A stretch of 64,000 nucleotides of DNA from Hemiscyllium ocellatum (lineage: Eukaryota). This document shows positions 4,156-60,463 of the stretch, piece by piece (the first letter of the stretch is position 1; each line of letters opens with the position of its first letter). Under the pieces are notes generated by a model, which ran no database searches, had not been told where the DNA came from, and saw only the letters and a program-made list of their open reading frames with translations. Both the position numbers and the translations under genes were made by a program. The stretch is from the NCBI RefSeq assembly GCF_020745735.1, contig NC_083413.1:64914001-64978000 (forward strand), in the 5' to 3' direction.

Positions 4156-4965
4156 CATGTTTCTCTGTGCGTCAAGATACAGAGCTGACACCTTGAAATA
4201 CTTGTTCTGCTTGCAAATCAGCAAATTAGTGATGAGCAAAAGATTTTTATGTTTTGAGGACATGGCATAATATTTGCAAAATCATCATTTCTGGGATGGT
4301 GTAAGTGTTTGCTACGTGCACCTATAGTTTTGGAACAATATTTCCCCGGAATGCCTATACTATGTCCTGAGTGCAGCTTTGTGAAAGTTGAAATTGTAGT
4401 CAGAAGGTACATTGTGGGTTTCCTAAATTGTGTGGCCCTCAACTAGATATCTTATAGAAGGCCAGGCTTTTGCAATATAAAGGAATGGTAACACTAAATG
4501 TCAAGGAAGGGCATCTAGTGGTGGATAATGGATGAGGAGGAAAAGATCTCCACATAGTACAGTTCTTTTCTGTAATGCTTAACTTCAAAAGATCAGCCAT
4601 GATTGTATTGAATGGTAGAGCAGGCTCAGGGGAGTGAATTGCTTACTCCTGGTCCTAGTTCTGATGTTTTTATGTGCCCTGTATGCTAACAATGATTGTA
4701 TGAGGAAGATGCATTTTAGGAGGAATAAAGCAGCTCTCCATTTCATTATCACACAATATCGTCCACATGAGTTTGTTTTATGGGGAAAAGTAAATGAAGA
4801 ACAATAACATCCATGCATCAATCTGTGGGTATAGTTCCGTTAACAGGCAAGTGTTTTTGTTCCAGCAAAATGAATGATTTCAGAGATATTGCATTGATGA
4901 TCATGCTGCTATCGTTGCAGCTTTTCCCTATTTTATTATCATTCTAGCTTGCTGTGTTACTCGGA

Positions 4966-5203
4966 GTGGCACGGTGGCACAGTGGTTAGCACTGCTGCCA
5001 CACAGCACAAGAGACCCAGGTTTGATTCCCACCTCAGGCAACTATCTGTGTGGAGTATGGACATTCTCCCCATGTCTGTGCGGGTTTCCTTTGGATGCTC
5101 CGGTTTCCTCCCACAATCCAAAATGTGCAGGTTAGGTGAACTGGCCATGCTAAATTGCCCGCAGTGTTAGGTGTAGGGAAATGGGTCTGGGTGGGTTGCT
5201 CTT
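4966..5203 (+). mobile_element. HE1-type SINE, 3' truncated (duplicated at 16256-16493)
   Basis: Same head and core as the other copies. Confidence 0.88.
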
Positions 5204-5367
5204 ACTTTAATCTACTTCCCTTCTGCGGAGAGCGAGCCAGTGCAGGGGACATTAAGAGCATGGGAAGAGCAAGCACAGTGCAGGGCATTAAGCCCACTGT
5301 GACTGTGTTAGAGGTATCCTGGCATCAGCGGCGGTGACCTGAGATCACCTGGCCTCTGAGGCAGGGA

Positions 5368-5583
5368 GTGTAGTGCTGGAAAAGCACAGCAGGTCAGGCA
5401 GCATCCGAGAAGCAGGAGAATCGACGTTTTGGGCATCAGCCTTTCATCATTCCTGATGAAGGGTTTGAGCCCGAAATGTCGATTCTCCTGCTCCTCGGAT
5501 GCAGCCTGACCTGCTGCCCTTTTCCAGCACCACATTCTCGAATCTGATCTCCAGCATCTGCAGTCCTCGCTTTCTCCTCTGCA
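5368..5583. mobile_element. Palindromic Penelope-type mini-element (duplicated at ~16659-16874)
   Basis: Inverted arms; CTGATGA-AGGGTTTGAGCCC-GAAA at 5453-5476; flanking gcagggag repeat. Confidence 0.75.
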
Positions 5584-7413
5584 GCAGGGAGAGCAAGTCC
5601 AACATGGAAGAGATCGAACCCTGTGTGGAGTACAAAGTTAAAAATTACACAACACCAGGTTATAGTCCAACAGGTTTATTTGGAATTACAAGCTTTTGGA
5701 GCACTGCTTCTTCATCAGGTAGCTAGTGGGGCAGAATCATAGGGCACAGAATTTATAGCAAAACATCATAGTGTCATCCAACTGATGTGATATATCGAAC
5801 AAACCACGATTGCTGTTAAGTCTCCACTTCCACACCTGTGGGGAATGCAAGCCCAGCATGGCTAAACTCTTAGGAAGGTCTGCAATATTGAACTTTTGAC
5901 TATGTTTCCTTATATTTCTCCTTTATACCTAATCACCCTTGTACCTAAGATGGCACTGGAAATGGTGATATTGTCCACTGTTGTATCATTGTACTTGGAT
6001 ACAGTGGCAATAAAAATTCAACTCTAATTCTAAGTCACAACCGATGACAGCTGAGCTCTCTCAGTATTTCAGGCATATAATTATTTCTGGTATGAGTTTT
6101 TGGTTCCTTAAGTAGCTTCAGATTAAAAAAATGGTTATTCTGGTTAGAGGACGGTAGACCCTGATTTACTTTTCTACCAGGTTCAATTGTTCTTTCTTTG
6201 AGAGTTTTCTAAACAGATCTATGGGAGCTTTTAATGAGAGAACAACAGAGCTTCAGTTTAATACCCTGTCTGAAGTATGTCCCCTCCAACAGAACATCTG
6301 TCTCCAAGTTCTGCACGAGATTGTCAGCCTAGATGTTTGCAGTCACATCTCCGGAATGGGCCTGGAACCCAGATCTTTTGATTTAGAAGATGAATGCTAT
6401 CAATTAACTGAGCCACTACAGATGCAACAGAAATAAAATGCCTCACAGGCAAAGTAGACCAACTGTAATTAATAGTGCCAGTTAAAGGTAGTATTCAACA
6501 AAAGGAGGAGATGCGTATGCTGTTTAACAGAATAGAATGCTTCAAGGCTTAGAACAATTTTAGAATTTAGTGAAAGGTGACCAAGAATTTGATAAAAAAG
6601 AAAGTATGCAAGAGACAAGTTGTCCGTGATATGTACAGGTGAAGAGTCTTAGTTTAAGCTGAGGAATGAAAAACAGTCCCTGAAGATGATTGTTGCACAA
6701 GACCTTCACCTTAAACTCCTCCTGCCTTTATAGACAGCTTGTTGTCATCCTTTTTCCCCTCTGTAAAAATCTGTGAAAGCCATAACTGTGGGAAAAAGGT
6801 CTGACCAGAATCCTTGAATTCCAAACCAAAGTTGTCACCATTTGCAACACTATCCCATATCAACTTTGCCAACTTTAAATAGCACAAGAAACCTCAGTAA
6901 TTCCACAGACTCAGGGATCATGAAGGATTTATTGCACAACTAAATTAACATAGTTGATGATCTCTTTAAGTAAATTGTTGGGGAAAGGGGATGGTATCAG
7001 AAGAAGGCTAACAAGCTGTTGAAAGCACATTTTTAGTTGGATATGTTGAAGAGAGCATGTTAGTTGAAGGAATGAAGTTCAAAATGGTAGCAAGAGTATC
7101 AATTCAACCTTACATACTGATTGATAATCTGCCTCCAGTGTGCATTTCATACAGTACACTCTTACAGTTCTTTCTCAACACTTCAAACATTGGTGTCCAG
7201 CATGCAACAGATGGAAGTGTTTGTGTGTTTAGTGTGATTGCCATTTTGTTCCCAAAAGGCACCCTTAATATTAAAACTATCGATGCATTAGACTTGAATT
7301 TTGCGGTCTTAAAAATGATTGGGCTTTACCAGAACCATGTATGGATTGTTATCTGCAGTTGAGGTCTCTTCATCCAGTGGGATTGAAAGAAATTTCTGTT
7401 AATTAAATTTGAC

Positions 7414-8195: not shown

Positions 8196-9824
8196 TCACA
8201 CACTAAGAATGGACTTGCTTCACTTCCTTCCTAAAGCATGGTATCCAGATTGTAATGCAACTTGAGCTGAAATAGTCATTTATAAAGGCTTCGCACAACT
8301 TCCTAGCTTTGTATTCTGGGCCTCTATTTATAAATCCAAAATCCCATTTCTTTTATTGACTCCTTTGTTGAACTTTGCGCCTTATAACATTTGTGTGCAT
8401 AATTTGTATGTCTCCCTTGTTTTGCACCCTCTTCAAGATTGGGCCATGTAGTATATATTGCCTCACTTCATTCTTCTGGCCTATATACACACTAGCCCAT
8501 ACTTCTGTGCCTCATTTCAGTTGCCATATATTGCGCATTCAACCAAACTATGTGCCTTCACCTGAATAGCAATTAACCTTCCTATATCTTATATTACATA
8601 TCATTAATAATACTGGACCTGCTGCTAAACCTTCTAGAACCTTCTCCCTGTGTGGCTGTTCAACCTGAAAAATAACCATGTATCCACCAGCCCCTAACCA
8701 ATTTTATACACATGCTGCTAGATTCTCCTTTAACCTTAGGCTTCACTTTTGCTTACAAGTCGAACATCTCACACTCTATCAACTGTCCTTTGAAAGTTTT
8801 AGATGTGAGTAATTTTTTGACGTTATCACTTTTATTCATCAGCATTTCACATAACTTTGGAGAAACTTATCATAAAACGATTGTATTTTGATAGTTAACC
8901 ATCTTATTTTAAAATATGTGTTCTATACCCTAACAACTCGGTGTGTGAAAAAGTTTTTTTTCCTGACATCTCTTTTGCTTATTGTACCCTTCGATCTTGT
9001 TCCTCTAATGAAGGGAACAGTTTTTCCCCATTTACACTATCCAACCCATTCATGATTTTGAAAGTCTATTGATTTTCCTCTCAGTTTTCTTCGCTCCGAG
9101 GAGAACAGCCCAATTGATTATTTCTACTTCCGTTTCTCCTGTGAAATCACAAAGTTTCAACTCTTAGTCTCCTTATGGTTGAAAAATGTAGAGAAAGACA
9201 AAGGAAGGAGTATTTCCCACTCCTTGTCACCAAACTCGATTTTCAACTGAATCGCTGTGCTCTCACCCCATAATCAAGGTACTCTATGTCAATGGACTTA
9301 ACCTGCCTGCAGGAAGAGGAACCTGGCAAAAGGATGCAAGTTCTATCTGTAGCTTGGTTCTAAATTGAAGATCTAAAGTAGTGTGAGAGGTGGTCTGAAA
9401 AGCCATGATGATGTGGTGAGGTAGTTTCGCAATGTCCACTTACATGAATGATAGGTGGAAAATAACAGTATCCATGGACATGCAGTGGCACGGTTGAATC
9501 TAGAGTCATCTGAAATCCTGGAGAAATAAATAGTTAGTTAACCATTCTGATGTTTTGGTCAGGAATTGCATAAAAAGGAGCAACAAAAGGAGCATTGAGA
9601 ACTGCATAGAAATGGGGTGAGTTTAGTTCATATTGAGATGTAAATGCTGAGAAATAAAGTAGTCTTTGCACATTCGTGAGACTGAGAACTCGAGACTTAA
9701 AACCTCATGAGAAAAACTGCATTTTTTTTGTTTTGTCATTTTCGCTACATTTTTCCAACATTTTTGCCATTGCACACTTCGCTTGAGGGAGTCGAAAATT
9801 CCATCTCTCCCATACCCATCTTTC

Positions 9825-10649: not shown

Positions 10650-11675
10650 CATATTTTTGCTGGGGTGTGAGCATCTTTGACTGGCCAGCTTTTAGTGTCC
10701 ATATCTAGCTGTCCTTGCGAAAGGCTTGGTGAGCTGCCTTCTTGAAGTGCTGCAGTGTCTGTGCTGTAAGTAGACCCACAATATGTTTAAGGAGGAAATT
10801 CCAGCATTTTCACCCACCAACAGTGAAGGAATGGGGATATATTTCCAAGTCAGGATGATGAGTGGTTTGGAAGAGAATTTGTATATGCTGGTATTTGCTG
10901 CCTTGACCTTCCAAATAAAAGTAGTTGTGGGTTTGAAAGATTCTAAGGATCTTGACAAATTCCTGCAGTGGGTCTTGTGCATAGTAGCCACTGCTGATAG
11001 TGAGTGTCAGTGGTGGAGGAAGTGAATGAAAGTGCCAATCAAGCAGACTGCTTTATCCCAGATGGTGACAAGCTTCTTGAATATTGTTGGAGATACACGC
11101 ATCCAGGTAGTTGGGGAGTATCCATCACACTCCTGACTGGTGCCTTGTTGATGGTAGACAGGCTTTGGGGAATCAGGAGGTGAGTTACTCAGCATAAAGT
11201 ATTTCTAACCTCTGAGCTGCTTTTGGAGCTGCTGTATGAATGTGGCAAGTCCAGTTGAGCTTCTGGTCAATGGTAATCCCCCAGGATATTGATAGTGGGG
11301 GAGTCAGTGATGGCAAAGCCACTGAATGTCAGTGGGTTGCTTCTTAGATTATCTCTTGTAGGAGAGGTTCATTACGTGGCATTTATGTAGCACAAACATT
11401 AATTGCCACTTATCAGTCTAAGCCTGTGTATTGTCCAGATCTTGGTGAATTTGGACAGGGACTTTTCAGTAGCTGAGAAGTCACAAATGGTGCTGTACAT
11501 TGTACAATCATCAGTGAACATCCCCACGTCTGACCTGATGATAGAGGGAACATCATTGTTGAAGCAGCCGAAAATGGTTGGGCCTTGGCCATGACCCTGA
11601 GGAACTCCTGCAGAGATTCCTGGAGCTGAGATGACTGAACTCTAGCAACCACAACCATCCTCCAATTTGTCAGGC
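10650..11675 (-). mobile_element. Degenerate CR1/L2-like LINE 3' fragment (its right part is duplicated at 1-410)
   Basis: Minus-strand RT remnants (the ...ISAGVPQG... motif corresponds to plus ccctgaggaactcctgcagagat) followed by a 3'UTR-like tail that recurs elsewhere in the window (51760-52050). Confidence 0.6.
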
Positions 11676-14600
11676 GACCAACAGCATTATTTTGTTTCTG
11701 TTTCTTTTCTCAGTTTGAGCTGGAGATTTACGGGAAATGGGGGCTTGTTTGTTTATGAAAAATAATGGTTTTAACATCCTGTTTCACAATTCTACACTTC
11801 CTGTTAGAGATAGCTTATTTGACTAATTGCAGGTGTGAAAGGAACTTACAGTGGTGGATTCATTTCCTTTCTCATTTTCTACTCCGCATCCTCCTATTTC
11901 AAAGGCCGTAACCTTGAAGTGCAGCAGTAACACTTTTGAGATATGGTGAGATATGGGATGGTCCGTTTCTGTCACTGAAAACTGGGAGAATGAAAACGAA
12001 GTCACACACCAAGCCCATAGCAAGAGCAGGAGGAAAGGCTGTTCTCAGTGTATTTCATTTTGATACGTAAAAACAGGTGAAAAGCGCTTTTTGGATGGGC
12101 ATGGGAATAATCATCATTTGAAATTCCCCATCAGGTCACACACCATTTTGACTGGGACGTGACCCATTGTTTCTTCACCAACTCTGGACTGAAATTCTGC
12201 AACATTCTCCCCAACACTCTGTGGAATTACCTACACTGCAGAAACTGTTCAATAGAGAAGCTCCCCAGGAGCTTGCAGTTGGGGGCAGGGCAACAAATCA
12301 GGAATGAGGTGTTCTGGAAGTTTGGAGCACCATGGAAATTTGGTGCCTATTTTGGTTTCAGTTCAAAGATGGCAAGGTTTTTTTTGTGGTTCATATGGTT
12401 GTAAGGCCGCATTATAAACTTCAGCTTCAACTGGGCAGAGACAGGGAGTCAGCAACAGTGTAAACTGAGGGCCAAGATTGGGGGATAGTGAGCCTAATGC
12501 ATAGGAGCAGAGTGAATCTATTAGAGCATAGAATCATAGACTCCCCAGTGGGGAAGCAGGCCACTTGGCCCATTGCATCCACACACACCCGTTGAAGAAC
12601 ATCTCACCCACACCCACTCCATTTCTGTGGCCCTGTATTTCCGACAGCTAATCCACTTAATTTGCACATCCCTGGACTTATGGGCAATTTAGCATTGCCA
12701 GACTGCCTAACCAGGACTGTGGAAGAAAACAGGAGTACCCAGAGGTAACCCATGCAGACATGGTGAGAATGTGTAAACTCCACAAGGCCAGAATTAAACC
12801 TGACTCTCTGGCTGTGTAAGGCAGCAGAGCTAACCACTGAGCCAGTATGCCACCCCGAGTACAGTAAGGAGAGGTGACTTAGAAGGGTCCTCAAGTGAAG
12901 CCATATTGGTAGAACTTAAAATCCAAAAAGGACAGTCACATTGCTGGAAATATAACAAAGAAAGTCTAAGAGAAATGGAAGAACAGGTATGCAGGCAAAT
13001 TTCAGAAAGGTGCAGAGGTAATTGAGTAGTGATAGTGGGGAATTTCAATTTCCTCAACATTAGCAGGGGTAGTCATAGTGTGAAATGTTTAGAGGGAGCA
13101 GAATTCTTAAAATGTATGGAAGAGAGATTGTAAGCCAGTATGTAGAATGCAACACAACAGAGGGGCAGACATTGACTTAATATCAGGGAATGAAGCAAGA
13201 CGAGTTTTAATATTCACCAACTTTACAGGCAATGAGTTCCAGATTTTCACCAACCTCAGTGAAAAAAAAAATCATGTCCCCTTTAAACCTTCTACGAGCT
13301 ACCTTAAATCTAAGCCCTCTGAACATTGACCTCCCCTGACTATTGGCTGTCATAATCTCAATCATGTCTTGGTCTCCTCTGTTCCAAGGAAGACAACCAC
13401 AGTCCACCCAATCTCTATTCATCATTAAAACTCTCCTTTCCGGTGTAACCACGTCTGACCTATAACGTGGATTCCAAACTATACACAATATTCTAGCTTT
13501 GGCCTAATCAGTGTTTTATACAATTCCACCATAATATCTGCAGCTTCTTGACCATCTAGTGCTCTGACCCGTGACAAGTTGCCTGCTGCTCTCTGTGTGT
13601 TAATAAGCAATGCAAGCCACAGAGGTTGGCACATTCTCAGTACAAAATAAAAGACTGGTAAGAAAGAATGCTAAGATACATCCTGGAGATGCATGAGTGG
13701 ATGCGTGAGTAGATGGATGTCCTTGCAGCAAAGTGACTTTGCAGAATGATGCAAGTCATAAGTGCCACTCAACACCAATGTCAAGTCCTGGAGGACTGAA
13801 GTGATTTGAATTTTGGATTAGTGGTGCTGGAAGAGCACAGCAGTTCAGGCAGCATCCAAACAGCAGCAAAATCGACGTTTCGGGCAAAAGCCCTTCATCA
13901 GGAATAAGTGATTTGAAAGCAGGCATGATGATGTGGTGAGGCTAATGGCTTGGTGAGGTCAACATGCATGGATGGAGGATGGAGGAGAATGTTGTGCTTG
14001 GGGCCGCAGGGACATATTGGAGAAGACAGAGTAGTCTGGAGCCCAGGAGAAGCAAGCAGCAAACTGATGCCATCCGTAACTGCTTTGACTTTCATGTTGG
14101 GAATTGGTCCTCTCTCATTTCTCAGGGAAGTGGAGAATTGGGAACTACAAAAAATTGAATCAAGCTGAGCAAATAATAAAATGTAAATGCATAGAAATAA
14201 GGTAGTCACCACTCATTAATGAGACCATTGAGAACCTGATTTTTCCATTTGTTGTTGTAATTTATCATCTTTCTCACCATTGCCCATGTGGTGGAAGGAG
14301 AGGAAAATTCAACCACATAAAAATCTATGCACACTAGATCGTATAGGTTTCTGAATCTTTGCCAAAAAAAGATTTTGAAAAAGTTGCCTCCATCTGGTAA
14401 TCCAAAAAAATTACTTCTTGAAACACCTTTGTACTCCCTGCGGTACAGTCACTCAATGATACACGATGAGGTCATTCAATATGATGTATTGATGTGCTCA
14501 TCTGTCAATGGCTGAATATGCCAAAGCAGTGGGATGTGCACTCACTTTCACATAAGGAAGAAGTCATGATTAGATTAGATTATTTACAGTGTGGAAACAG

Positions 14601-17600
14601 GCCCTTTGGCCCAACAAGTCCACACTGACCCGCAACCCACCCATACCCCTACATTTACCCCTTACCTAACACTACGAGCAATTTAGCATGGCCAATTCAC
14701 CTGACCCGCACATCTTTGGACTGTGGGAGGAAAACGGAGCACCCGGAGGAAACCCACGCAGACACAGGGAGAACGTGCAAACTCCCCACAGTCAGTCGCC
14801 TGAGTCGGGAATTGAACCTGGGTCTCAGGCGCTGTGAGGCAGCAGTGCTAACCACTGTGCCACCGTGCCATCCACAATGATCTTTGTGTACCATTCAGGT
14901 TCCCTCCTTGAGAGATGTAGTTAGCAACTTAAACTGCAGCTCACAGCTATTAATAGGGATCATTTCTCCTTTGTAAACTTGCCATTAAAAATGGGCTATT
15001 TTGTACATTTTTCCTTAGTGAGAAGATAGTATAATGATATGTTGCACCTGAAGAAAAGTGAAGGGAAACTCTTAAGGGAGTTAGAAACCATAAGTAAGAG
15101 CCATTACTGGAGGTTTTTTGCCCAAGGAGATTGTGCTTGAGCTGTATTGGGTCATAAAGTCAATAAGAACAACATTGCTCTTGTGCACCACAGGATCCAC
15201 AAGGATGGCATGTTTCTCTGTGCAGAGAAAGTGAGGACTGCAGATGCTGGAGATCAGAGCTGAAAATGTGTTGCTGGAAAAGCGCAGCAGATCAGGCAGC
15301 ATCCAAGGAGCAGGAGATTCGACGTTTTGGGCATAAGTCCTTTTTCAGGAATCCTGAAGAAGGGCTTATGCCCGAAACGTCGAATCTCCTGTTCCTCGAA
15401 TGCTGCCTGACCTGCTGCGCTTTTCTAGCAACACATTTTCAGCTCATGTTTCTCTGTGCGTCAAGATACAGAACTGACACCTTGAAATACTTGTTCTGCT
15501 TGCAAATCAGCAAATTAGTGATGAGCAAAAGATTTTTATGTTTTGAGGACATGGCATAATATTTGCAAAATCATCATTTCTGGGATGGTGTAAGTGCTTG
15601 CTACGTGCACCTATAGTTTTGGAACAATATTTCCCCGGAATGCCTATACTATGTCCTGAGGGCAGCTTTGTGAAAGTTGAAATTGGAGACAGAAGGTACA
15701 TTGTGGGTTTCCTAAAGTGTGTGGCCCTCAACTAGATATCTTATAGATGGCCAGGCTTTTGCAATATAAAGGAATGGTAACACTAAATGTCAAGGAAGGG
15801 CATCTAGTGGTGGATAATGGATGAGGAGGAAAAGATCTCCACATAGTACAGTTCTTTTCTGTAATGCTTAACTTCAAATGATCAGCCATGACTGTATTGA
15901 ATGGTAGAGCAGGCTCAGGGGAGTGAATTGCTTACTCCTGGTCCTCGTTCTGATGTTTTTATGTGCCCTGTATGCTAACAATGATTGTATGAGGAAGATG
16001 CATTTTAGGAGGAATAAAGCAGCTCTCCATTTCATTATCACACAATATCGTCCACATGAGTTTGTTTTATGGGGAAAAGTAAATGAAGAACAATAACATC
16101 CATGCATCAATCTGTGGGTATAGTTCCGTTAACAGGCAAGTGTTTTTGTTCCAGCAAAATGAATGATTTCAGAGATATTACAGCTGATGATCATGCTGCT
16201 ATCGTTGCAGCTTTTCCCTATTTTATTATCATTCTAGCTTGCTGTGTTACTCGGAGTGGCACGGTGGCACAGTGGTTAGCACTGCTGCCACACAGCACAA
16301 GAGACCCAGGTTTGATTCCCACCTCAGGCAACTATCTGTGTGGAATATGGACATTCTCCCCATGTCTGTGCGGGTTTCCTTTGGATGCTCCGGTTTCCTC
16401 CCACAATCCAAAATGTGCAGGTTAGGTGAACTGGCCATGCTAAATTGCCCGCAGTGTTAGGTGTAGGGAAATGGGTCTGGGTGGGTTGCTCTTACTTTAA
16501 TCTACTTCCCTTCTGCGGAGAGCGAGCCAGTGCAGGGGACATTAAGAGCATGGGGAAGAGCAAGCACAATGCAGGGCATTGAGCCCACTGTGACTGTGTT
16601 AGAGGTATCCTGGCATCAGTGGCGGTGACCTGAGATCACCTGGCCTCTGAGGCAGGGAGTGTGGTGCTGGAAAAGCACAGCAGGTCAGGCAGCATCTGAG
16701 AAGCAGGAGAATTGACGTTTTGGGCATCAGCCTTTCATCATTCCTGATGAAGGGTTTGAGCCCGAAATGTCGATTCTCCTGCTCCTCGGATGCAGCCTGA
16801 CCTGCTGCCCTTTTCCAGCACCACATTCTCGAATCTGATCTCCAGCATCTGCAGTCCTCGCTTTCTCCTCCGCAGCAGGGAGAGCAAGTCCAACATGGAA
16901 GAGATCGAACCCTGTGTGGAGTACAAAGTTAAAAATTACACAACACCAGGTTATAGTCCAACAGGTGTATTTGGAAATACAAGCTTTGGGAGCACTGCTT
17001 CTTCATCAGGTAGCTAGTGGGGCAGAATCATAGGCCACAGAATTTATAGCAAAACATCATCGTGTCATCCAACTGATGCGATATATCGAACAAACCACGA
17101 TTGCTATTAAGTCTCCACCTCCACACCTGTGGGGAATGCAAGCCCAGCATGGCTAAACTCTTAGGAAGGTCTGCAATATTGAACTTTTGACTATGTTTCC
17201 TTATATTTATACTTTATACCTAATCACCCTTGTACCTAAGATGACACTGGAAATGCTGATATTGTCCCCTTTTGTATCATTGTACTTGGATACAGTGGCA
17301 ATAAAAATCCAACTCTAATTCCAAGTCACAACCGATGACAGCTGAGCTCTCTCAGTATTTCAGGCATAAAATTATTTCTGGTATGAATTTTTGGTTCCTT
17401 AAGTAGCTTCAGATAAAAAAAATGGCTATTCTGGTTAGAGGACGGTAGACCATGGTTTACTTTTCTACCAGGTTCAATTGTTCTTTCTTTGAGAGTTTTC
17501 TAAACAGATCTATGGGAGCTTTTAATGAGAGAGCAACAGAGCTTCAGTTTAATACCCTGTCTGAAGTATGTCCCCTCCAACAGAACATCTGTCTCCAAGT

Positions 17601-18704
17601 TCTGCATGAGACTGTCAGCCTAGATGTTTGCAGTCACATCTCCGGAATGGGCCTGGAACCCAGATCTTTTGATTTAGAAGATGAATGCTATCAATTAACT
17701 GAGCCACTACAGATGCAACAGAAATAAAATGCCTCACAGGCAAAGTAGATCAACTGTAATTAATAGTGCCAGTTAAAGGTAGTATTCAACAAAAGGAGGA
17801 GATGCGTATGCTGTTTAACAGAATAGAAAGCTTCAAGGCTTAGAACAATTTTAGAATTTAGCGAAAGGTGACCAAGAATTTGTTCAAAAAGAAAGTATGC
17901 AAGAGACAAGTTGTATGTGATATGTACAGGTGAAGAGTCTTAGTTTAAGCTGAGGAATGAAAAACAGTCCCTGAAGACGATTGTTGCACAAGACCCTCAC
18001 CTTAAATTTCTCCTACCTTTATAGACAGCTTGTTATCATCCTTTTTCCCCTCTGTAAAAATCTGTGAAAGCCATAACTGTGGGCAAATGGTCTGACCAGA
18101 ATCCTTGAATTCAGAACCAAAGTTGTCACCATTTGCAACACTATCCCATATCAACTTTGCCGACTTTAAATAGCACAAGAAACCTCAGTAATTCCACAGA
18201 CTCAGGGATCATGAAGGATTTATTGCACAACTAAATTAACATAGTTGATGATCTCTTTAAGTAAATTGTTGGGGAAAGGGGATGGTATCAGAAGAAGGCT
18301 AATTTGCTGTTGAAAGCACATCTTTAGTTGGATATGTTGAACAGAGCATGTTAGTTGAAGGAATGAAGTTCAAAATGGTAGCAAGAGTCTTAATTCAACC
18401 TTACATACTGATTGATAATCTGCCTCCATTGTGCATTTCATGCAGTACACTCTTACAGTTCTTTCTCAACACTTCAAACATTGGTGTCCAGCATGCAACA
18501 GGTGGAAGTGTTTGTGTGTTTAGTGCGATTGCCATTTTGTTCCCAAAAGGCACCCTTAATATTCAAACTATCGATGCATTAGACTTGAATTTTGCGGTCT
18601 TAAAAATTATTGGGCTTTACCAGAACCATGTCTGGATTGTTATCTGCAGTTGAGGTCTCTTCATCCAGTGGGATTGACAGAAATTTCTGTTAATTAAATT
18701 TGAC
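11264..18704 (+). repeat. Segmental/tandem duplication copy B
   Basis: Near-identical to 1-7413. It carries 26 extra nt in the Penelope hairpin (~15320-15345) and diverges after ...aaatttgac 18704. Confidence 0.97.
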
Positions 18705-19834: not shown

Positions 19835-22800
19835 CTAATGAGAACCTCTTTGTTTCCAGACTGGTATTGAATTTTGCCTTGGTGCCATCGCTTTTGCACA
19901 ATAACTATACCATGACTCTTGTCTGGTGGCCTGGCACGTCGCCGTCAGCTCAAGGCAGACAAAGCAAAATTCGACAAAACACCTACTGCATCTAATATTT
20001 TTACAACCCGATTGGTTGTGCTCAAGCAGCCTGCCACAAGTAGGGCAGGCCCGAATAGAAGGGCAATTTGTCACAACAGTATCTGGGAGGTTAATTAATG
20101 GGCAGGTACGCAGTGTATCCAATTCTATGTTGGTGCATCCTTCATTGTCACATCGATCAGAACGTGGCCCAGGTCCTTTCCATGGCTTCAGGCATTGCCA
20201 GCAGAATTCAAAAACACTCCGTTTCTCAGCAGTACAGATAATGCAGCGGACACTTAGGTTATCCAGGTCTTTGCGTTCAACAAATGTGCTGCATCCTGGA
20301 CACTAGTGGTAAAAATAAGGCCAAATATTTAGTGACATGAATATATACACATTGATAACCCAGACTGCAACCATGAAAGGTGCAAACCCCCAGAAGTTGC
20401 TGATGTTTCTGTTATCAATGATGATGTGTTAACAGTTTAACCATCACTCCTCTGATAAAATCAAGACCCTAAATCCACTCCTCACAACACCCCAGGATTG
20501 CTACACTCCTACAATGAACAAAAGGAAGCAAAAGAAATAAATTAGAGTATGAGGGGAAGCTAGCTAGGAATGTAAAACCAGACAGCAAGTGCTTCATTTA
20601 GGAATCTGAAAGGTAAAATAATAAGTAAAAGGAGTAATGGACCTCTAGAGCATGAGAATGGGGAATTAAGAGTAGATAATAAAGTAATATTGGATGAGAT
20701 AACATCTTCACCATAGAGCATATTTTTAAAATTGCCAATAACAGCTATAAACCAGGAATGGAAGGGAGAGAGGAACATAATGAGATCACAATCATGTGGA
20801 AATCTGTATTAAACAAACTGCTGGACCTAGAGGCTGACAAGTCTCTGGCTCCAGATGAATTTCATTCCAGAGACTTGAAAGAGGTGGCAATTAAAGAAGT
20901 AATTGCATTTGTCGAAATTTTCCAAACTTCCTTTGAATCAAGAAAGATTCTACTGGACTATGCAAGAAAGCCAAAATAACTAATCTATTTATGAAGGAAA
21001 GTGTGCACATAATAGGAAACTGCAGGCAAGTTCACTTGATGTCTGGTGTGAGAAAGCTTGAAGAATCAATTATTGAAGTGATTACAGTGCACACTTAGAA
21101 AAATTCAAGGTAATTGGTAAGGGTCAAGATGGTTGTGTTGAAGGGAAATCATTTTTAACCAATTTATTAGAGTATTTTGAAAGAGTAACTTGTACTAAGG
21201 ATAAAGGGGAACCAGCAGACATACTCTACTCAGATTTCCAGATACATTTGAGGAGTTGCTGCATCAAAGGTTATTGTACAAAGTGGAAGTTCACAGAGTA
21301 ACGGGTAATAATCAAGCATAGATGGAAGATTTGCCAGCTGACAAAAAAACAGGGAATATGTGTAAATTGATGATGTGCTGTTGAAATCTGTATTGGGGCT
21401 CAAACTTTGGACAGTTTACTTCAATGACGTAAATCCTCAACATTTAATTACATCAATATGTGACGTGACAGTTAACTTGCATTGTTATTTCTGTAGAAAA
21501 CTTACTGATTGGTATTCACAGTACTCAGCTGCAGCCAACACAGCAACAGTTTCCTCAAAATATTGCTGCTCTTCTGCGGTCAGAACTGCCAGCTTGCGAA
21601 CTTCATCATAGGGCCATTCATGTCCACATTTCTCTGTCGTTCCCTCCTTTAGTGCTGGGCAGAAGAACTTATACTGACCCTATGGTTCCAAAGTTAAATG
21701 CAAATGAAAGCTTCAAACTTCAATTCAGTGAGCATCATGTGTGTGGCAGAGTAGTATATCATTCAGTTACAATTCACTAACTGAGTTCCCAACTCACTCA
21801 GGTAGATTCAATGTAATAAAAGTGATAAATAAGTTGCAGATTTTTATTTTAAATTGTTGAAGATAGAACTAAATATTATAATACTAATAAAATACCAAAT
21901 TTGAAATAAATAGATGACAAGAACCAAAGTCACATCATACAGTACAATGTGCAGTAATTTATTTTGATGTACAATAAGTAGTGGTATTGTTCACAAAGCC
22001 CACATATTCAGAATATAATTTTTAACAAGTGTTATGTACTCCAGACTACCTGAAACTTCTCCTTAGGGAGATTGTGGTCTAGCAAAGTTTGACATGTTCA
22101 CTGCAGTACATTTTATTGCATGAGAAACTAGGGACAAGAATGATTCAATTATATTAATAAAATTCAAATTTGGAAAAAAAAACATAAAAAGCATCACTGC
22201 AGGTGGAATAAAGCATTGTTGTATTTTTACACATTTATACAGTTTCTTTAAATTTGACAGACTCAATTTAAAAGCCAAAAATGCTTACCTGATCTAGGAG
22301 ACTTCGACACCAACCGGTCAGTGAATTTGGATCAACTGCATGTTTGCAGGACATTTCTGCTCGCAAAATATTAGGATCATCATCTCCTGAAATGGCAAGG
22401 AACACAGTCACTTTTGAAAGGATGCTATTTGGGAATCAGCAAATGTGAATTACCAATAACAGAAGGGCCAGTTTAAACATTGACCTTGGACTAATATTTG
22501 ATGAACATCTTAACATGATGATGGATTTTTGCAAGGTTTGTGAAGGTTTGTAGCTCAGGGTGAGGTTTGCTCACTGAGCTGTAGGCTTGATATCCAGATG
22601 TTTCATTACCTGGCTAGGTAACATCATCAGTGGCGACCTCCAAGTGAAGCGAAGCTGTTTCTCCTGCTTTCTATTTATATCTTTCTCCTGAATGGGGTTC
22701 CTGGGGTTTGTGGTGATGTCACTTCCTGTTTGTTTTCTGAGGGGTTGATAGATGGCATCTAGGTCTATGTGTTTGTTTATGGTGTTGTGGTTGGAGTGCC

Positions 22801-25382
22801 AGGCCTCTAGGAATTCTCTTGGCATGTCTTTGCTTAGCCTGTCCCAGGATAGATGTGTGGTCCCAGTCGAAATGGTGGTTTATTTCATCTGTGTGTAGGG
22901 CTACGAGGGAGAGAGGGTCGTATCTTTTTGTGGCTAGCTGGTGTTCATGTATCCTGGTGGCTAACTTTCTTCCTGTTTGTCCTATATAGTTTTGTGGCAG
23001 TCCTTGCATGAATTTTGTAGATGATGTTGGTTTTGTCCATGGGTTGTACTGTATCTTTTAAGTTTGTTAGTTTTTGTTTGAGAGTTTTGGTGGATTTGTG
23101 TGCTACTAGGATTCCGAGGGGTCTCAGTAGTCTGGCTGCCATTTCAGAAATGGGGCTTTAGTTTGAGAGGAAGTAATTGAAGTTGAGCTGGCATAACTCA
23201 AAATGGCCATTAAAATTCCTGGAACCTGAAAGTTGCTGAGCTCAACAGGAATTTATAAAGAAGTGACGAAATAACAAGGCAAAGCAACTATTGTTATATG
23301 TAAATTTCTGAAAGGGAACACCACTTTGAAACTGAAAATGTGATCCAAGAGGTTTAATTATCCAGTCATTAATATTCATTAACTGGAATATAGATCTCAC
23401 ACAGATTAGATTAGATTACTTACAGTGTGGAAACAGGCCCTTCGGCCCAACAAGTCCACACCGACCCGCCGAAACGCAACCCACCCATACCCATACCCCT
23501 ACATTTACCCCTTACCTAACACTACGGGCAATTTAGCATGGCCAATTCACCTGACCCGCACATCTTTGGACTGTGGGAGGAAACCGGAGCACCCGGGGGA
23601 AACCCACGCAGACACAGGGAGAACGTGCAAACTCCACACAGTCAGTCGTCTGAGGCAGGAATTGAACCCAGGTCTTAGATTAGATTACTTAGATTTGTAA
23701 ACTTAGATTACTTACAGTGTGGAAACAGGCCCTTCGGCCCAACAAGTCCACACCGACCCGCCGAAGCGCAACCCACCCATACCCCTACATATACCCCTTA
23801 CCTAACACTACGGGCAATTTTAGCATGGCCAATTCACCTGACCCGCACATCTTGGGACTGTGGGAGGAAACCGGAGCACCCGGAGGAAACCCACGCAGAC
23901 ACGGGGAGAACGTGCAAACTCCACACAGTCAGTCGCCTGAGGCGGGAATTGAACCCAGGTCTCTGGCGCTGTGAGGCAGCAATGCTAACCACTGTGCCAC
24001 CGTGCCGCCCTAGGACCTTCACATTTTCTATGAGGAAGTGGCATTTGCACTACAGTTATAGCTGGAACAAAGATCATCTTCCAAATTTCATTTTGTCGTT
24101 TTTAAGTCACCTTGCGCTGGCATGTTATAACACACCTCTGGAGGAGGTGGGATTTAAACCTGGCTGTCCTGGCACAGAGATAGGGACATTACTACTGTAC
24201 GTCAAGAGCCCCCAAATGAGGTAGATTGAAACCTTCCCCACCTCACCATCCATATACAGGGCGACCCCGGTAACTACAGAATCATTTTCCGCACTTTCAG
24301 TTACCCGCAGATTACTGCGGCCCAAACATATTATCGGGAACCAGGGGTCAGGAGGTTGCCTGGAAGGTACATTTCCCATTGAAGTGATTGGGTTCGCTCC
24401 TATCCGCGGTTTCCGGCTTCCGTGGTAGATCCTGGAACGCATCCCCCGGGGTATGTGGGGACTACTGGATGTAAAAGGATATCTGGGGAGCTCTGACAAT
24501 GATCACCAAAATTTGACTGGATGGCTAATTTGTGATTGAAAGTGATGACAACAGCGTGGATTCCATTCCTTCATCAGCTGAGCTAAAAATCACACAACAC
24601 CAGGTTATAGTCCAACAGGTTTGATTTGGAAGCACTAGCTTTCAGAGCGACGCTCCTTCATCAGGTGATTGTCAGGAGCGACGCTCCGAAAGCTAGTGTG
24701 CTTCCAATTAAACCAGTTGGACTATAACCTGGTGTTGTGTGATTTTTAACTTTGTACACCCCAGTCCAACACCGGCATCTCCAAATCATTCATCTGCTGA
24801 AGTCACTATGAAGGAGTTGCCTTCTCAACCTGTTCCCTCATCTAAGGCATGGTGACTGTAGGGTAAAATCATGACTGAATTGTTATTCTTTAATTAGAGA
24901 TTGGGACAATGACGATTTTACTTTCACTTCTCACTATCTGGGAATGTGAACATGAATACACCATAATTCTACTGGCAAAGTAAATAAGCTTCAACCGTGA
25001 TCATTTATATACAAGACAAAGCATCGAAATGTTTAGTGTATATTTCAGTGTAATAGTAACATCATTTTATTTGCACTTAAATCAGCTCTTAACCAGTTGA
25101 AGTCACACCGCCTTGATCTGAAAGGACGTGGTCATCTCGAAGAAAAATCAAAAGACGTTTAAAGGCCTTTGAAAAAATAATTTATCATGTTAATCGATTA
25201 TCACGAATTTGCGAATAAAAATTCTAAAACTAAATTCTTGTTGCTGGTTCAAAACTTGACATGCAGATAACAGAAAGCATATATTTTACTTTACCTGTGA
25301 TCTCATCCTTCCTTTTCACAAACTTCAGCGTACGGTCGTCTGGATCGTAACGCTTTTCTATTTGTTGTTGTAGCGTTGTCAT
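19835..25382 (-). CDS. Minimal RBR-type (RING1-IBR-RING2) E3 ligase, 4 coding exons: 25295-25382, 22289-22386, 21506-21679, 19835-20302; 275 aa
   Basis: Manual splicing gives GT-AG introns with compatible phases (1,0,0) and one open frame: [176 protein letters not shown]...RACPTCGRLLEHNQSGCKNIRCSRCFVEFCFVCL...VWKQRGSH*. IBR-like (CPGC..CIIC..FCWQC) and RING2/Rcat-like (CPTC..GC..CSRC..FCFVC) Cys patterns are present. Confidence 0.92.
20510..21410 (+). mobile_element. Old degenerate CR1 fragment in RBR intron 3
   Basis: L.ADKSLAPDEFHSRDLKEVA tether/RT motifs with stops and frameshifts. Confidence 0.8.
22530..23150 (-). mobile_element. Penelope-like element 3' fragment (GIY-YIG endonuclease + pLTR)
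   Basis: Frameshifted NIIYKI..NYIGQTGRKLATRIHEH..HHFDWDHTSILGQAKQ..REFLEAWHS. Confidence 0.88.
23404..24010 (-). mobile_element. Two tandem HE1-type SINEs (23404-23675 lacking the head; 23702-24010 full length)
   Basis: Two near-identical bodies, each with a (tctaa)n tail. Confidence 0.92.
24257..24467. mobile_element. Tigger/pogo-type MITE resembling MER44
   Basis: Left end TA|CAG..., right end ...GGGGACTACTG. Internal tttcagttacccgcag..gcggcccaaacatatta and ggttcgctcctatccgcggtttccggcttcc..ggaacgcatccccc resemble my recollection of the MER44/Tigger7 consensus ends. Confidence 0.6.
24585..24790. mobile_element. Second family of palindromic hammerhead-bearing mini-element (related copies at 44280-44458, 54828-54996, 5627-5725)
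   Basis: Arms aaaaatcacacaacaccaggttatagtccaac / gttggactataacctggtgttgtgtgattttt. Minus-strand CAC-CTGATGA-AGGAGCGTCGCTCT-GAAA-GCTA-GTG at 24633-24667. Confidence 0.75.
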
Positions 25383-25436
25383 CTCCCAGCTGTATAATGT
25401 GATCTTTGTACAGAAACACTGAATATAAATTGGACT

Positions 25437-27460: not shown

Positions 27461-27771
27461 TAGATTAGACTTACAGTGTGGAAACAGGCCCTTCAGCCCA
27501 ACAAGTCCACACCGACCCGCCGAAGCGCAACCCACCCATACCCCTACATTTACCCCTTACCTAACACTACGGGCAATTTTAGCTTGGCCAATTCACCTGA
27601 CCCGCACATCTTTGGACTGTGGGAGGAAACCGGAGCACCCGGAGGAAACCCACGCAGACACGGGGAGAATGTGCAAACTCCACACAGTCAGTCGCCTGAG
27701 TCAGGAATTGAACCCGGGTCTACAGGCGCTGTGAGGCAGCAGTGCTAACCACCGTGCCACCGTGCCGCCCA
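27461..27771 (-). mobile_element. HE1-type SINE (young, CpG retained)
   Basis: Near-consensus copy. Confidence 0.92.
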
Positions 27772-33499: not shown

Positions 33500-36400
33500 A
33501 GAACGTTTAAGGACTCATCCACCGACGTAATTTGGGTTGAGGTTAGAAACAGGAAAGGAGAGGTCACTCTGTTGGGAGTTTTCTGTAGGCCTCTGAATTG
33601 TTCCAGGGATATAGAGGAAAGGATAGCAAAGATGATTCGCGATAGGAGCTAGAGTAACAGGGTAGTTGTTATGAGGGATTTTAACTTCCCCAATATTGGG
33701 GTAAGGGATAAGATTTATGAACATCTGGGTAGGAATAACGTGATCAGGGATAGCCAGCATGGTTTTGTGAAGGGCAGGTCGTGCCTCACAAACCTTATTG
33801 AGTTCTTTGAGAAGGTGACCAAGGAAGTGGATGAGGGTAAAGCAGTAGATGTTGTGTATATGGATTTTAGTAAGGCGTTCGATAAGGTTCCCCATGGTAG
33901 GCTAATGCTAAAACTTCGGAGGTATGGCATTGAGGATACATTAGAGGTTTGGATTAGGAATTGGCTGGCTGGAAGGAGACAGAGGGTAGTAGTTGATGGA
34001 TTATGTTCATCTTGGAGCGCAGTTACTAGCGGTGTACCACAAGGATCTGTTTTGGGACCATTGCTTTTTGTTATCTTTATAAATGATCTAGAGGAAGGAC
34101 TTGAAAGCTGGGTAAGCAAGTTTGCGGATGACACAAAAGTCGGTGGAGTTGTGGATAGTGAGGAAGGAAGTGGTAGGTTACAGCGGGATATAGATAAGTT
34201 GCAGAGCTGGGCGGAAATGTGGCAAATGGAATTCAATGTAGCTAAGTGCGAAGTCGTTCACTTTGGTAGGAATAACAAGATGATGGATTACTGGGCTAAT
34301 GGTAGGCTACTTGGTAGTGTGGATGAGCAGAGGGATCTTGGTGTCCATGTACACAGATCTCTGAAAGTTGCCACCCAGGTAAATAGTGCTGTGAGGAAGG
34401 CATATGGTGTACTGGGCTTTATTGGCAGAGGAATTGAGTTCCGGAGTCCTGAGGTCATGTTGCAGTTGTATAAGACTCTGGTGCGGCCTCATCTGGAGTA
34501 TTGTGTGCAGTTTTGGTCGCCATACTATAGGAAGGATGTGGAAGCTTTAGAACGAGTGCAGAGGAGGTTTACCAGGATGTTGCCTGGAATGGTAGGAAAA
34601 TCTTATGAGGAAAGGCTGAGGCACTTGGGGCTGTTCTCATTGGAGAAGAGAAGGTTTAGGGGAGATCTGATAGAAGTGTATAAGATGATTAGGGGTTTAG
34701 ATAGGGTAGATACTAAGAACCTTTTACCGCTAATGGAGTCAGGTGTTACTAGGGGACATAGCTTTAAATTAAGGGGTGGTAGGTATAGGACAGATGTTAG
34801 GGGTAGATTCTTCACACAGCGGGTTGTGAGTTCATGGAACGCCCTGCCCGTATCAGTGGTGAACTCTCCTTCTTTATGGTCATTTAAGCGGGCACTGGAT
34901 AGGCATTTGGAAGTTATTGGGCTAGTATAGGTTAGGTAGGATTCGGTCGGCGCAACATCGAGGGCCGAAGGGCCTGTACTGCGCTGTATCCTTCTATGTT
35001 CTATGTTCTATTGACTGGGATTACTATAATTCAAGTAGTTTAGATATGTCAGTTTTTGTTCAATGTGTGCAGGAGGGTTTTCTGACACAGTATGTAGACA
35101 GGCCAACAAAGGGCGATGCATGTTGGATTTGGTACTGGGAAATGAATCCGGCCAGGTGTTAGATGTGGAGGTAGGTAAGCACTTTGGTGATAGTGACCAT
35201 AATTTGGTTATATTTACAATAGCAATGGGCAGGGATAGGTATATACTGCAAGGAAAGAGGAATAGCTTGGGGAAAGGCAATTATGATGCAGTTAGGCAAG
35301 ATTTAGGATGCAAAGGATGGGGAAGGAAACTGCAGGTGATGGACACACTTGAAATGTGGAGCTCATTCAAGAAACAGCTACTGTGGGTCCTTGATAAGTA
35401 CATATCTATCAAGCAGGGAGATAGTTTTTGAGAGAGGCAGCCATAGCTTAAAGAAGTTGAAGCTCTTGTCAAGAGGAAGAAGAAGGCTTGTGAGGATGGG
35501 GTGTGAAGGCATAGGTCGGGGGCTTGAAAGTTATAAGTTAGCCAGAAAGAATCTAAAGAGATGGCTAAGAAGAGCCAGAAAGAGACATGAGAAGTTGTTG
35601 GTGGATAGGATCAAGGAAAACCTTAAGGCCTTCTATAGGTATATCAGGAATAATAGAATGACGAGAGTAAGATTTGGACCAATTAAAGATAGTAGTGGAA
35701 AGTTGTGTGTGGAATCTGAGGATATAGGGGAAATGCTTAATATTTATCGTCGGTATTCACATTGGAAAAGGGCAATGTTAGTGAGAATACAGAGATACAG
35801 GCTACAAGATTAGATGGGATTGAGGTTGACAAAGAGGTTGACAATTTTGGAAGATCTGAAAATAGATAAGACCCCTTGGCCAGATGGGATTTATCCTTGA
35901 TTCTTTGGGAAAACAGGAAGGAGATTGCAGAGCCTTTGACTTCGATATTTATGTTATCATTATTGACAGGAGCAGTGCCAGAAGACTGGAGGATAGCAAA
36001 TGTTGTTCCCTTGTTTAAGAAGGGGAGTTAGGACAACCCTGGTAATTATAGACCAGTGAGCCTTACTTCGGTTATGGTTAAAGGGTTGGAAAAGGTAATA
36101 AGAGATAGGATTAATAATCATCTGGAAAGGGATAGTCAACATGGTTTTGTGAAGAGTAGCTTATGCTGAACTAACCTTATTGAGTTCTTTGAGAAGGTGA
36201 CAAAACAGGTGGATGAAGGTAAAATGGTAAATGTGCTGTATATGGACTTAAGTAAGGCGTTTGATAAGGTTCCACATGGTAGGCTATTGCACAAAATACA
36301 GAATTTCGGGATTGAAGGTGATTTAGTATTTTGGTCAGAAATTTTTCCTGAAAAATGACAGAGGGTGATGATTGATGGGAAATGTTCATCCTGAAGCTCA

Positions 36401-39832: not shown

Positions 39833-40411
39833 CTAGACCCCTCCACCAGGCAGGCGTAACACCAAGAGGATTGTTGATTTGTCCGTGATGCTGTATTCAG
39901 AGAATTTTTTGTTATCCTCCAATTCTTTGTTGGCAAAAAGAAGGCGCAGATCTGCAGTGGCTAATCCACCAAAAGAAACAAACGGAGAAAAATGAATAAA
40001 CGTAAAAAAAACCTCAAGAACATCCTAAATACTATGGTTAGTTATTCCAATTTTAACCTTAAAAGGATTTAGACCCCGCATCCCTTTGGTAGTTAAATTC
40101 TAAAGTTTGGGATAAGCGCTTTAAAACCCAAAGATTTGAATCGGTATCATGTAGTTTAATTCTCATTTTGTACCACCAGGTCTTATGATTGTCCACTCAA
40201 TTCTTTAACTGATTACTGCTATCACTTTCAAAAGCCCACTCTCATGCTCTGTTATTGCTCACGTACCTGCTTCTCCCGGCATTTTCTTCAACAACAATTC
40301 CTTAAACTTGAGAACGGGAATCCTGTTAAATTCTGCCTCAGTGTGTGAAACATCAATAGTCATTTTTTCCCCTTTCAACCCTACGACAAACACTTGAAAG
40401 ATTTTCCCCAT
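39833..40411 (-). CDS. Single-domain ubiquitin-like protein with C-terminal di-glycine (LRLPGG-GV*), 2 exons: 40267-40411 and 39833-39960; 90 aa
   Basis: Spliced translation: MGKIFQVFVVGLKGEKMTIDVSHTEAEFNRIPVLKFKELLLKKMPGEA/ATADLRLLFANKELEDNKKFSEYSITDKSTILLVLRLPGGGV*. It aligns by eye with ubiquitin ([52 protein letters not shown]). Phase-1 intron CAG|GTACGT...TTAG|CC; an alternative in-frame CAG acceptor 9 nt downstream is possible. Confidence 0.92.
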
Positions 40412-40498: not shown

Positions 40499-40516
40499 AG
40501 TTTCACTTTTAATTTC
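40499..40516 (-). promoter_or_regulatory. ISRE/IRF-E-like element upstream of the UBL gene
   Basis: Plus strand AGTTTCACTTTTAATTTC (minus GAAATTAAAAGTGAAACT), ~90 bp upstream of the UBL ATG. A GAS-like TTCCTGAAA lies at 40567-40575. Confidence 0.55.
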
Positions 40517-60444: not shown

Positions 60445-60463
60445 AAAGCTTACTTTTAGAGGG

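Follow-up and report, generated by a model that had tools for sequence, protein, structure and literature searches.

RBR-type E3 ligases form a small and heavily studied class, with 14 members in human. Here we describe a member of an extra, almost unstudied RBR branch, the ARIT family, encoded on the minus strand at positions 19835–25382 of a 64,000-nt stretch of the epaulette shark (Hemiscyllium ocellatum) genome (RefSeq assembly GCF_020745735.1, contig NC_083413.1, positions 64,914,001–64,978,000; the whole stretch is referred to as the window). The best overall explanation of the data is that ARIT is an active RBR E3 coupled to a neighbouring ubiquitin-like protein (UBL), to which we assign a probability of about 0.6.

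Several described RBR ligases offer points of comparison. In Parkin, as in the system described here, a UBL is combined with an RBR core, and regulation by the UBL and by phospho-ubiquitin goes through the RING1/RING1-IBR surface. The Parkin UBL stays permanently attached to the ligase and does not end in GG; the protein also has RING0, REP, a full RING1 and a His residue (His433) two positions after the catalytic Cys (position Cys+2). The UBL–ARIT fusions described below, unlike Parkin, keep a cleavable-looking R-x-x-GG. HOIL-1 (RBCK1) and RNF216 are activated by ubiquitin at RING1-IBR and differ from ARIT in their full RING1 and in additional domains, which in HOIL-1 are UBL and NZF. The RBR ARIH1 (HHARI) handles ISG15, and the UBL NEDD8 activates it; ARIT lacks its Ariadne autoinhibitory and UBA-like domains, its full RING1 and its Cys+2 His (His359). 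RNF144A and RNF144B, like ARIT, have little beyond an RBR core and lack the Cys+2 His (GC-A-Q-MMC), but their RING1 is a full C3HC4 and they end in a transmembrane helix; the published tree places ARIT apart from the RNF144 clade (PMC12234341).

The ARIT family was named in 2025 from Atlantic salmon (Front Immunol, PMC12234341) as RBR-only proteins with no transmembrane segment, apart from RNF144 and Ariadne. Salmon ARIT.1 and ARIT.2 were induced with a log2 fold change above 11 by rIFNg (recombinant interferon-gamma) and above 4 by infectious salmon anaemia virus (ISAV), and are among the most strongly interferon-induced genes in this fish; ISG15, HERC7/9 and USP18 were co-induced, and specificity for ISG15 was raised as a possibility (PMC12234341). 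This report, the one paper mentioning the name that our literature search for ARIT returned, ascribes a ‘typical RBR domain structure’ to salmon ARIT, and its data are on expression alone. The traceable loss of RING1 zinc site I, the candidate relocated His, the ancient invertebrate fusions to a GG-ended UBL and the conserved linkage of UBL, USP18-like and ARIT genes are not mentioned in it and seem to be unreported. Literature searches with the zebrafish name ch211-212k18.15 and with DDB_G0292642 found nothing.

An intact ARIT gene in the epaulette shark

The gene has four exons on the minus strand (25382..19835) and a 275-aa product. Exon 1 (25295–25382; residues 1–29 plus 1 nt; donor GTAAAG) encodes the conserved N-terminal peptide EKRYDPDDRTLKFV, with D26-E-I28-T standing where C1-x-I-C2 of RING1 is expected. 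Exon 2 (22289–22386; residues 30–62; acceptor TTTCAG, donor GTAAGC) carries the acidic run DDD, C43-x-H45 of RING1 site II, W55 and a lone Cys, C56, while D48 and S51 occupy the former C5 and C6 positions. Exon 3 (21506–21679; residues 63–120; donor GTAAGT) adds C69-P70 and C80, also of site II, followed by the RING1-IBR helices (residues 86–115), which include the conserved Y86, E99, F103 and E104. Exon 4 (19835–20302; residues 121–275, coding sequence 20302..19838, stop codon TAG at 19837..19835) encodes IBR, RING2/Rcat and a conserved C-terminal tail. All splice sites are canonical and the segments join into one frame. The spliced product is 100% identical over residues 1–275 to the RefSeq uncharacterized protein LOC132821587 [Hemiscyllium ocellatum] (P0202 in our set), whose annotated gene span of 5548 bp is the same as 19835..25382. 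The length and coordinates given in the initial annotation of this DNA were exact, and all motifs it cited are found in the translation: DEITGDD (residues 26–32), MSCKH (41–45), WC (55–56), FCPA (67–70), KCGHEW (79–84) and SGCKNIRC (218–225).

Orthologues from horn shark (82% identity), elephant shark, lungfish, coelacanth, gar and bichir are 265–275 residues long, align from the first residues and share the start Met. The four-exon layout, with breaks near residues 29/30, 62 and 120, recurs in gar and in both elephant shark copies, and intronless sponge relatives have the same sequence at the disputed RING1 site. The shark gene is intact and correctly annotated, and the family of which it is an orthologue already has a name.

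One could suppose that the odd RING1 is an annotation artefact and that the missing Cys pair is encoded by an upstream exon that went unrecognised; a potential splice acceptor (TTATACAG; 25383–25395, minus strand) does lie 7 nt upstream of the ATG, and the frame is open for 32 codons upstream. The open frame is not conserved, however, the alignments of the horn shark, lungfish and gar orthologues begin at residue 1 with proteins of similar length, the RefSeq model shows no difference, and the D-x-I-T replacement sits inside conserved coding sequence throughout the family, the intronless sponge genes included. We regard an artefact as extremely improbable. The initial annotation had itself considered that an upstream exon might restore RING1; the orthologue starts, exon layout, sponge genes and RefSeq model speak against such an exon, and a truncated gene model was rejected given the starts and lengths of the orthologues, the identical RefSeq model and the family-wide D-x-I-T. 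Splicing of exon 1 of the shark UBL gene (see below) into the same acceptor was rejected as well, because it is out of frame and meets a stop. The acceptor suggests a non-coding 5′ exon and a promoter farther upstream.

No second ARIT copy was found in the window. In the elephant shark (Callorhinchus milii) ARIT is followed, 5 kb downstream, by a tandem second paralogue (locus L005, 18190–22850). In the slow loris (Nycticebus coucang; locus L006, 11611–12483) ARIT residues 35–272 are encoded in one block and the fish introns are absent. Two candidate RNA runs of H. ocellatum contain ∼0.24 of the sequence words, a fraction compatible with a spliced mRNA.

Family membership and distribution

In a Pfam search the shark protein matched only IBR/IBR_1 (also IBR_2), the match lying in exon 4 (E = 7e-9); domains of other kinds, UBL and Ariadne included, were not found, in line with the absence of flanking Ariadne and UBL domains that the initial annotation had remarked at a length of 275 aa. 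Exons 1–3 had no Pfam match. The last exon matches 591 representative clusters at E ≤ 1e-3 and the ARIT family profile matches 839 proteins at E ≤ 1e-10, which puts family membership far beyond chance. RNF144A-like is a frequent automatic name of members, and ARI5/7, DDB_G0292642-like and si:ch211-212k18.15 also occur. Members are found in chondrichthyans, ray-finned fishes, coelacanth, lungfish, caecilian, newt, elephant and slow loris. Identity of the shark protein to teleost members is 60–70%, and vertebrate ARIT (shark, teleost, caecilian and mammalian members) forms one clade with a support of 95 in the Shimodaira–Hasegawa-like approximate likelihood ratio test (SH-aLRT).

The N-terminal ITGD and MSCGH motifs of the family recur in the supplementary alignment of PMC12234341. 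Like the shark protein, salmon ARIT combines EKRYDP..LKFV..D-ITGD, MSCGH (MSCKH in the shark), IBR, RING2 with CK-N and a VAPRQTSIP tail in an RBR-only protein of ∼250–275 aa. By sequence we identify the gene as the epaulette-shark orthologue of ARIT, a predicted stand-alone RBR-type E3 of ∼270 aa (RING1-like, IBR and RING2, with no flanking domains). It is a further member of a known and already named family; neither the family nor its occurrence in tetrapods, some mammals among them, had been recognised in the initial annotation.

Remodelling of RING1

Ligand conservation was counted in an alignment of 113 diverse ARIT members numbered on the shark protein. The RING1 site II ligands C43, H45, C69 and C80 are present in 111–112 of the 113. 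At the positions of site I we see D26 (98/113), T or D at both 29 and 48, and S51 (87/113); C56 (104/113) is the sole Cys remaining near this site. Almost all sequences of a larger set (305 members) fit the pattern D-[D/T]-C-H-[S/T]-C-C-C. ARIT does not have the eight C3HC4 ligands of a RING1 with two zinc sites; site II alone is present. Remodelling of the E2-binding zinc site, with DEITGD in place of the first Cys pair, was already pointed out for the shark protein, and the D/T/S pattern proves to be family-wide.

Intermediates are found in the UBL-fused sister clade. Two of its members (P0130 and P0117) have a canonical RING1, C-x2-C...C-x-H-x2-C-x2-C...C-x2-C; another (P0150) has four Cys at positions 26, 29, 51 and 56, and most other members keep Cys 26 and 56 alone. 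Given the canonical and intermediate forms, site I was lost stepwise, and the alignment identifies the ARIT region as a real RING1 deprived of one zinc site in this way. Residue 44 (codon at 22345–22347, minus strand) is Lys in P0202, the motif reading MSCKH in Hemiscyllium and Heterodontus; 104 of the 113 members have MSCGH.

The usual E2-contact residues are kept: I28 (I or L in 108/113), the helix aromatic W55 and P70 after the seventh ligand. A known precedent is the U-box, a domain that binds E2 without any zinc. In the RING-like fold of the U-box zinc ligands are replaced by polar or charged residues and E2 binding is kept, as might be the case for ARIT site I; both zinc sites are gone in the U-box, which moreover works outside the RBR context, while ARIT keeps site II. 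By this analogy, the ARIT RING1 may be of a half-U-box type with E2 binding retained. ARIT can be seen as a natural experiment on how much RING1 an RBR needs.

IBR, RING2 and presumed catalytic residues

The IBR domain (20135–20302, minus strand; residues 121–176) has all eight Cys ligands of a two-zinc-site IBR (C121, C124, C140, C143, C154, C157, C171 and C176), invariant or nearly so. RING2/Rcat (19898–20065, minus strand; residues 200–255; Pfam IBR match at residues 77–118 of exon 4) has the zinc ligands C206, C209, C225, C228 and C233, C236, C243, C255. Its pattern, C206-x2-C209-x10-C220-x4-C225-x2-C228-x4-C233-x2-C236, aligns to the catalytic domain of ARIH1. Each Cys of IBR and RING2, as well as C220, is present in at least 96 of the 113 members, and all except C243 (96) in at least 111.

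By its alignment position Cys220 (codon TGT, 20003–20005, minus strand) is the presumed catalytic residue; it is conserved in 112/113 members, and the adjacent K221 in 108/113. The canonical catalytic His position, Cys+2, is occupied by N222 in the shark protein and, across the 113 members, by N (64), Y (16), F (9) or H (7). Since the coral protein and many members of the sister clade have CKHM at the catalytic Cys, the Cys+2 His looks ancestral and lost in vertebrates. RNF144A/B are also without it (supplementary alignment of PMC12234341).

A candidate replacement is His215 (codon CAC, 20018–20020, minus strand), present in 331 of 347 distinct RING2 segments, where E-H stands in place of the E-K/R of other RBRs. 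The Cys+2 His was found in 9 of 16 segments without H215 versus 31 of 331 segments with it (Fisher p = 9e-6, not corrected for phylogeny). As the nine Cys+2-His segments lacking H215 form one clade, this compensation is a hint and not a proof; judging from the alignments, H215 probably takes over from the lost Cys+2 His. The initial annotation correctly read RING2 as having retained the catalytic Cys and exchanged His for Asn, but the exchange is less unusual than was implied: RNF144 likewise lacks the His, and H215 is conserved.

The C-terminal tail A260-P-R-Q-N-S-I-P-V-W269 (19856–19885, minus strand; family consensus VAPRQTSIPVW) has a predicted local distance difference test score (pLDDT) of ∼90 in the structural model described below. 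Both K221 and the VAPRQTSIPVW tail are strongly conserved across the aligned sequences.

Predicted fold and structural relatives

We built an AlphaFold (AF2) model of shark ARIT from the 113-sequence alignment. It has a pLDDT of 92.3 (93–98 for residues 11–110) and a predicted template modelling score (pTM) of 0.76; a single-sequence model (pLDDT 32) was discarded in its favour. Every significant match of the model in the PDB is an RBR ligase. HOIL-1 and RNF216, with 18–20% identity to ARIT, are the best matches: HOIL-1 in 7yui (Z 9.1) and in 8eaz (E2-Ub/Ub complex; Z 8.5, 209 residues aligned, model residues 14–257), and RNF216 in the E2-Ub/Ub complex 8eb0 (Z 7.8). The match to the two E2-Ub/Ub transthiolation complexes extends over three domains. 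ARIH1 in the SCF super-assembly gives Z 8.0; it is also the sole sequence-level PDB match to ARIT (RING2 and IBR, E ∼1e-3). The RNF144A RING1 structure 1wim matches model residues 23–118 (Z 7.2). Residues 18–177 align to RING1-IBR of HOIL-1, Parkin, HOIP and ARIH1/2 with Z 5–9 (Z 6–7 for Parkin), thus covering RING1 and the helices that follow it. The structure prediction and alignment to RBR families that had been proposed for this protein gave a full-length RBR fold, with matches to RBRs alone.

The three domains of the model superpose best on active or transfer-state RBR structures, while autoinhibited Parkin and HHARI match over RING1-IBR alone. The active-like conformation of the model agrees with the lack of an autoinhibitory domain and is not evidence of regulation.

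UBL and USP18-like genes adjacent to ARIT

A two-exon UBL gene (39836–40411, minus strand), whose product ends with LRLPGG followed by GV, is located 14.4 kb upstream of ARIT on the same strand. Head-to-head with it lies the 5′ part of a USP18-like gene (43815–54350, plus strand; USP, ubiquitin-specific protease). The Cys-box exon of the latter (∼54264–54350) has a weak Pfam UCH match (profile positions 3–30) and matches the elephant shark USP exon. The Cys-box (..NNCCVNALLQ..; 54174–54350, plus strand) stands at the very end of the gene range, so the remainder of the catalytic domain must be encoded farther downstream, perhaps past the window, and the USP model looks 3′-incomplete.

The same neighbourhood is found in other fishes. 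Elephant shark has USP, UBL, ARIT and the second ARIT, with UBL 3 kb from ARIT; in gar, UBL and ARIT are head-to-head, 4 kb apart; and in fugu the order is USP, UBL exon 1, ARIT, with UBL exon 1 at 555 bp from ARIT. The orientation of the ARIT and UBL genes varies among lineages, but their linkage persists in all of these as well as in the window. A LINE (long interspersed nuclear element) reverse-transcriptase open reading frame (ORF) lies between UBL and ARIT here (33671–34927, plus strand; RVT_1, E = 4e-28), and repeat insertions probably explain the 14-kb spacing in comparison with 3 kb in elephant shark. In fugu (Takifugu rubripes, locus L003) a second UBL-like C-terminal exon (..VVQRLRGGG; 13527–13640, minus strand) is present downstream of ARIT, separate from UBL exon 1 (9300–9446); it may belong to a second UBL gene flanking ARIT.

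UBL–ARIT fusions and predicted UBL–ligase contact

Outside vertebrates, ARIT was found fused to a UBL in the sponges Ephydatia and Halichondria, in four Acropora corals and in the brachiopod Lingula. The sponge UBL–ARIT is a single ORF on a 381-kb genomic contig; the coral ones are on 2-kb contigs, probably transcripts. A structural UBL domain needs no GG, and Parkin and HOIL-1 lack such a motif. Among the UBL–ARIT fusions, 97 of 102 have R-x-x-GG at the end of the UBL, exactly where ubiquitin ends. The shark UBL scores up to 48.9 bits against the fused UBLs and 33.6 bits against ubiquitin. In the tree (midpoint root) all non-vertebrate branches are UBL fusions; for this reason the simplest history is that an ancestral fusion was split into neighbouring genes in vertebrates. 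ARIT is thus tied by fusion or adjacency to one GG-ended UBL from sponges to fishes.

The layout resembles by analogy the ubiquitin-fusion precursors UBA52, RPS27A and FAU, where a UBL with internal GG directly precedes another protein. In these precursors the UBL-GG-protein layout implies cleavage after GG. In UBL–ARIT, unlike in UBA52, RPS27A and FAU, the fusion partner is the putative ligase itself, and cleavage is only predicted. A search for fused homologues in other fish had been proposed earlier as Rosetta-stone evidence; fusions do exist, but mostly outside fishes, where the one case is a loach model (P0055) without GG that may be a merged annotation.

Complex prediction was run on a coral fusion cut at the GG (UBL 1–82 versus ARIT module 88–341) together with three controls. 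The interaction prediction score from aligned errors (ipSAE) was 0.73, the best of the three controls reaching 0.00; the mark used for this score is reached by 51 of 78 solved complexes and by 2 of 108 mismatched pairs. Contact agreement between runs was at least 93%, and pLDDT of the partners at least 87. The hydrophobic-patch region and the C-terminal tail of the UBL were placed on the RING1-IBR helices and on an IBR strand. In shark numbering the predicted interface comprises Y86–A112 and C124–I142, including the conserved F103, E104, V128, E129, R130 and D132, with the strand S125–D132 predicted to pair with the UBL tail. In other RBRs the RING1-IBR surface binds activating ubiquitin, phospho-ubiquitin or NEDD8; the top structural match of ARIT, 7yui, is HOIL-1 RING1-IBR bound to ubiquitin chains. 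The idea that the shark RBR is linked to the free UBL encoded nearby, put forward in the initial annotation, gained from the fusions, from the adjacency in three other fish lineages and from this prediction.

Proposed mechanism and alternatives

From the gene model, family membership, ligand pattern, predicted fold, synteny and fusions we infer catalysis, E2 use, a role of H215 and binding or conjugation of the UBL in the following way. An E2 charged with a ubiquitin-like modifier would dock on the RING1-like domain, which would keep the RING fold through zinc site II (C43, H45, C69 and C80) and contact the E2 with I28, W55 and P70, site I being replaced by a U-box-like polar set (D26, T29, D48 and S51, with the lone C56). 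The modifier would move as a thioester to Cys220 of RING2, where His215 is proposed to replace the lost Cys+2 His, and then to a substrate. The LRLPGG UBL is predicted to bind the surface formed by the RING1-IBR helices and IBR, the site of allosteric activators in other RBRs. The UBL would probably also be cargo, and the adjacent USP18-like protease could be the processing and deconjugating enzyme. The conserved residues make it likely that ARIT is an active Cys-relay ligase. With less confidence, though still on the favourable side, we expect it to be functionally coupled to the neighbouring UBL; that it is a dedicated E3 conjugating this UBL is a tentative suggestion, for which we see slightly worse than even odds.

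Several observations weigh against coupling of an active ARIT to the UBL. A promoter scan of the 1.2 kb preceding the shark ARIT ATG found no interferon-stimulated response element (ISRE) or gamma-activated site (GAS), whereas ISRE-like sites are present at the starts of the UBL gene (40499–40510) and of the USP gene (43726–43737). The complex prediction was made on the coral protein and not on the shark pair, and may reflect model memory of solved RBR–ubiquitin complexes. The predicted interface shows no excess conservation (0.52 versus 0.56 for the rest of the protein and 0.61 within residues 84–160). The closeness of the fused UBLs to the shark UBL is not uniform: some, such as that of P0034, do not surpass ubiquitin, and some score below it. 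A RING1 lacking zinc site I could also bind the E2 less tightly. Finally, no UBL is present within 10 kb of ARIT in the slow loris; as ARIT persists in mammals and, in this species, has no UBL nearby, it can probably work without one.

The last point would also fit an ordinary interferon-induced E3 for ubiquitin or ISG15, by analogy with ARIH1, whose neighbourhood reflects shared regulation in an immune cluster and not a pathway. Co-induction of salmon ARIT with ISG15, HERC7/9 and USP18 and the suggested specificity for ISG15 (PMC12234341) agree with such a role, as does the likeness of the fused UBLs to ubiquitin (∼27–37 bits). Co-regulation alone, however, leaves unexplained the fusion of UBL and ligase in sponges, corals and a brachiopod, with GG in 97 of 102 cases, and the linkage that elephant shark, epaulette shark, gar and fugu have kept through local inversions, while the complex prediction supports direct contact; we hold this explanation to be rather unlikely. 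A different possibility is that ARIT is a pseudo-RBR with no E2-dependent ligase activity, acting as a UBL-binding adaptor or regulator that, for instance, sequesters or presents the UBL. Such a role would account for the family-wide loss of three of the four site I ligands, for the absence of the Cys+2 His in most vertebrate members and for the predicted placement of the UBL on a non-catalytic RING1-IBR surface. It is difficult to reconcile with C220 in 112/113 members, with the strong constraint on the zinc ligands of RING2 and IBR, on K221 and on H215, or with the kept E2-contact positions (I28, I/L in 108/113; W55; P70). RNF144, an established active RBR, also lacks the Cys+2 His, and U-boxes bind E2 without zinc. 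We consider a pseudo-RBR improbable and favour an active ligase coupled to the UBL.

If an active, UBL-coupled ARIT is assumed, it would become a candidate for the E3, either dedicated or UBL-activated, of a second antiviral tagging system beside ISG15. In an extended and more speculative version, which we think less likely than not, ARIT, the LRLPGG UBL and the USP18-like protease would make up a self-contained tagging system that predates ISG15 and existed already in sponges and corals. In these animals the tag would be made together with its own E3 as one precursor and separated from it after GG; jawed vertebrates would have split the system into neighbouring, immune-induced genes. The ligase would work with a one-zinc, half-U-box RING1 and with the catalytic His shifted from Cys+2 to Cys−5, and the tag would switch it on through the RING1-IBR site in a feed-forward manner. 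The traceable loss of zinc site I, the candidate relocated His, the ancient fusion to the UBL and the conserved gene neighbourhood give a testable case for a dedicated tagging module.

Other elements in the window

The segments 1–7000 and 11264–18300 form a tandem duplication with a period of ∼11.26–11.29 kb and copies 98–100% identical (families D4–D7); it may have arisen by recent segmental duplication or else as an artefact of assembly. A 253-nt interspersed repeat family (D2) has five copies, at 23423–23675, 23710–23962, 27469–27721, 3310–3562 and 14573–14825, two of which are inside ARIT intron 1. A long CR1-type element (60392–63999, plus strand), with an ORF1 containing a GDSL-esterase-like domain followed by an ORF2 of at least 878 codons, reaches the end of the window.

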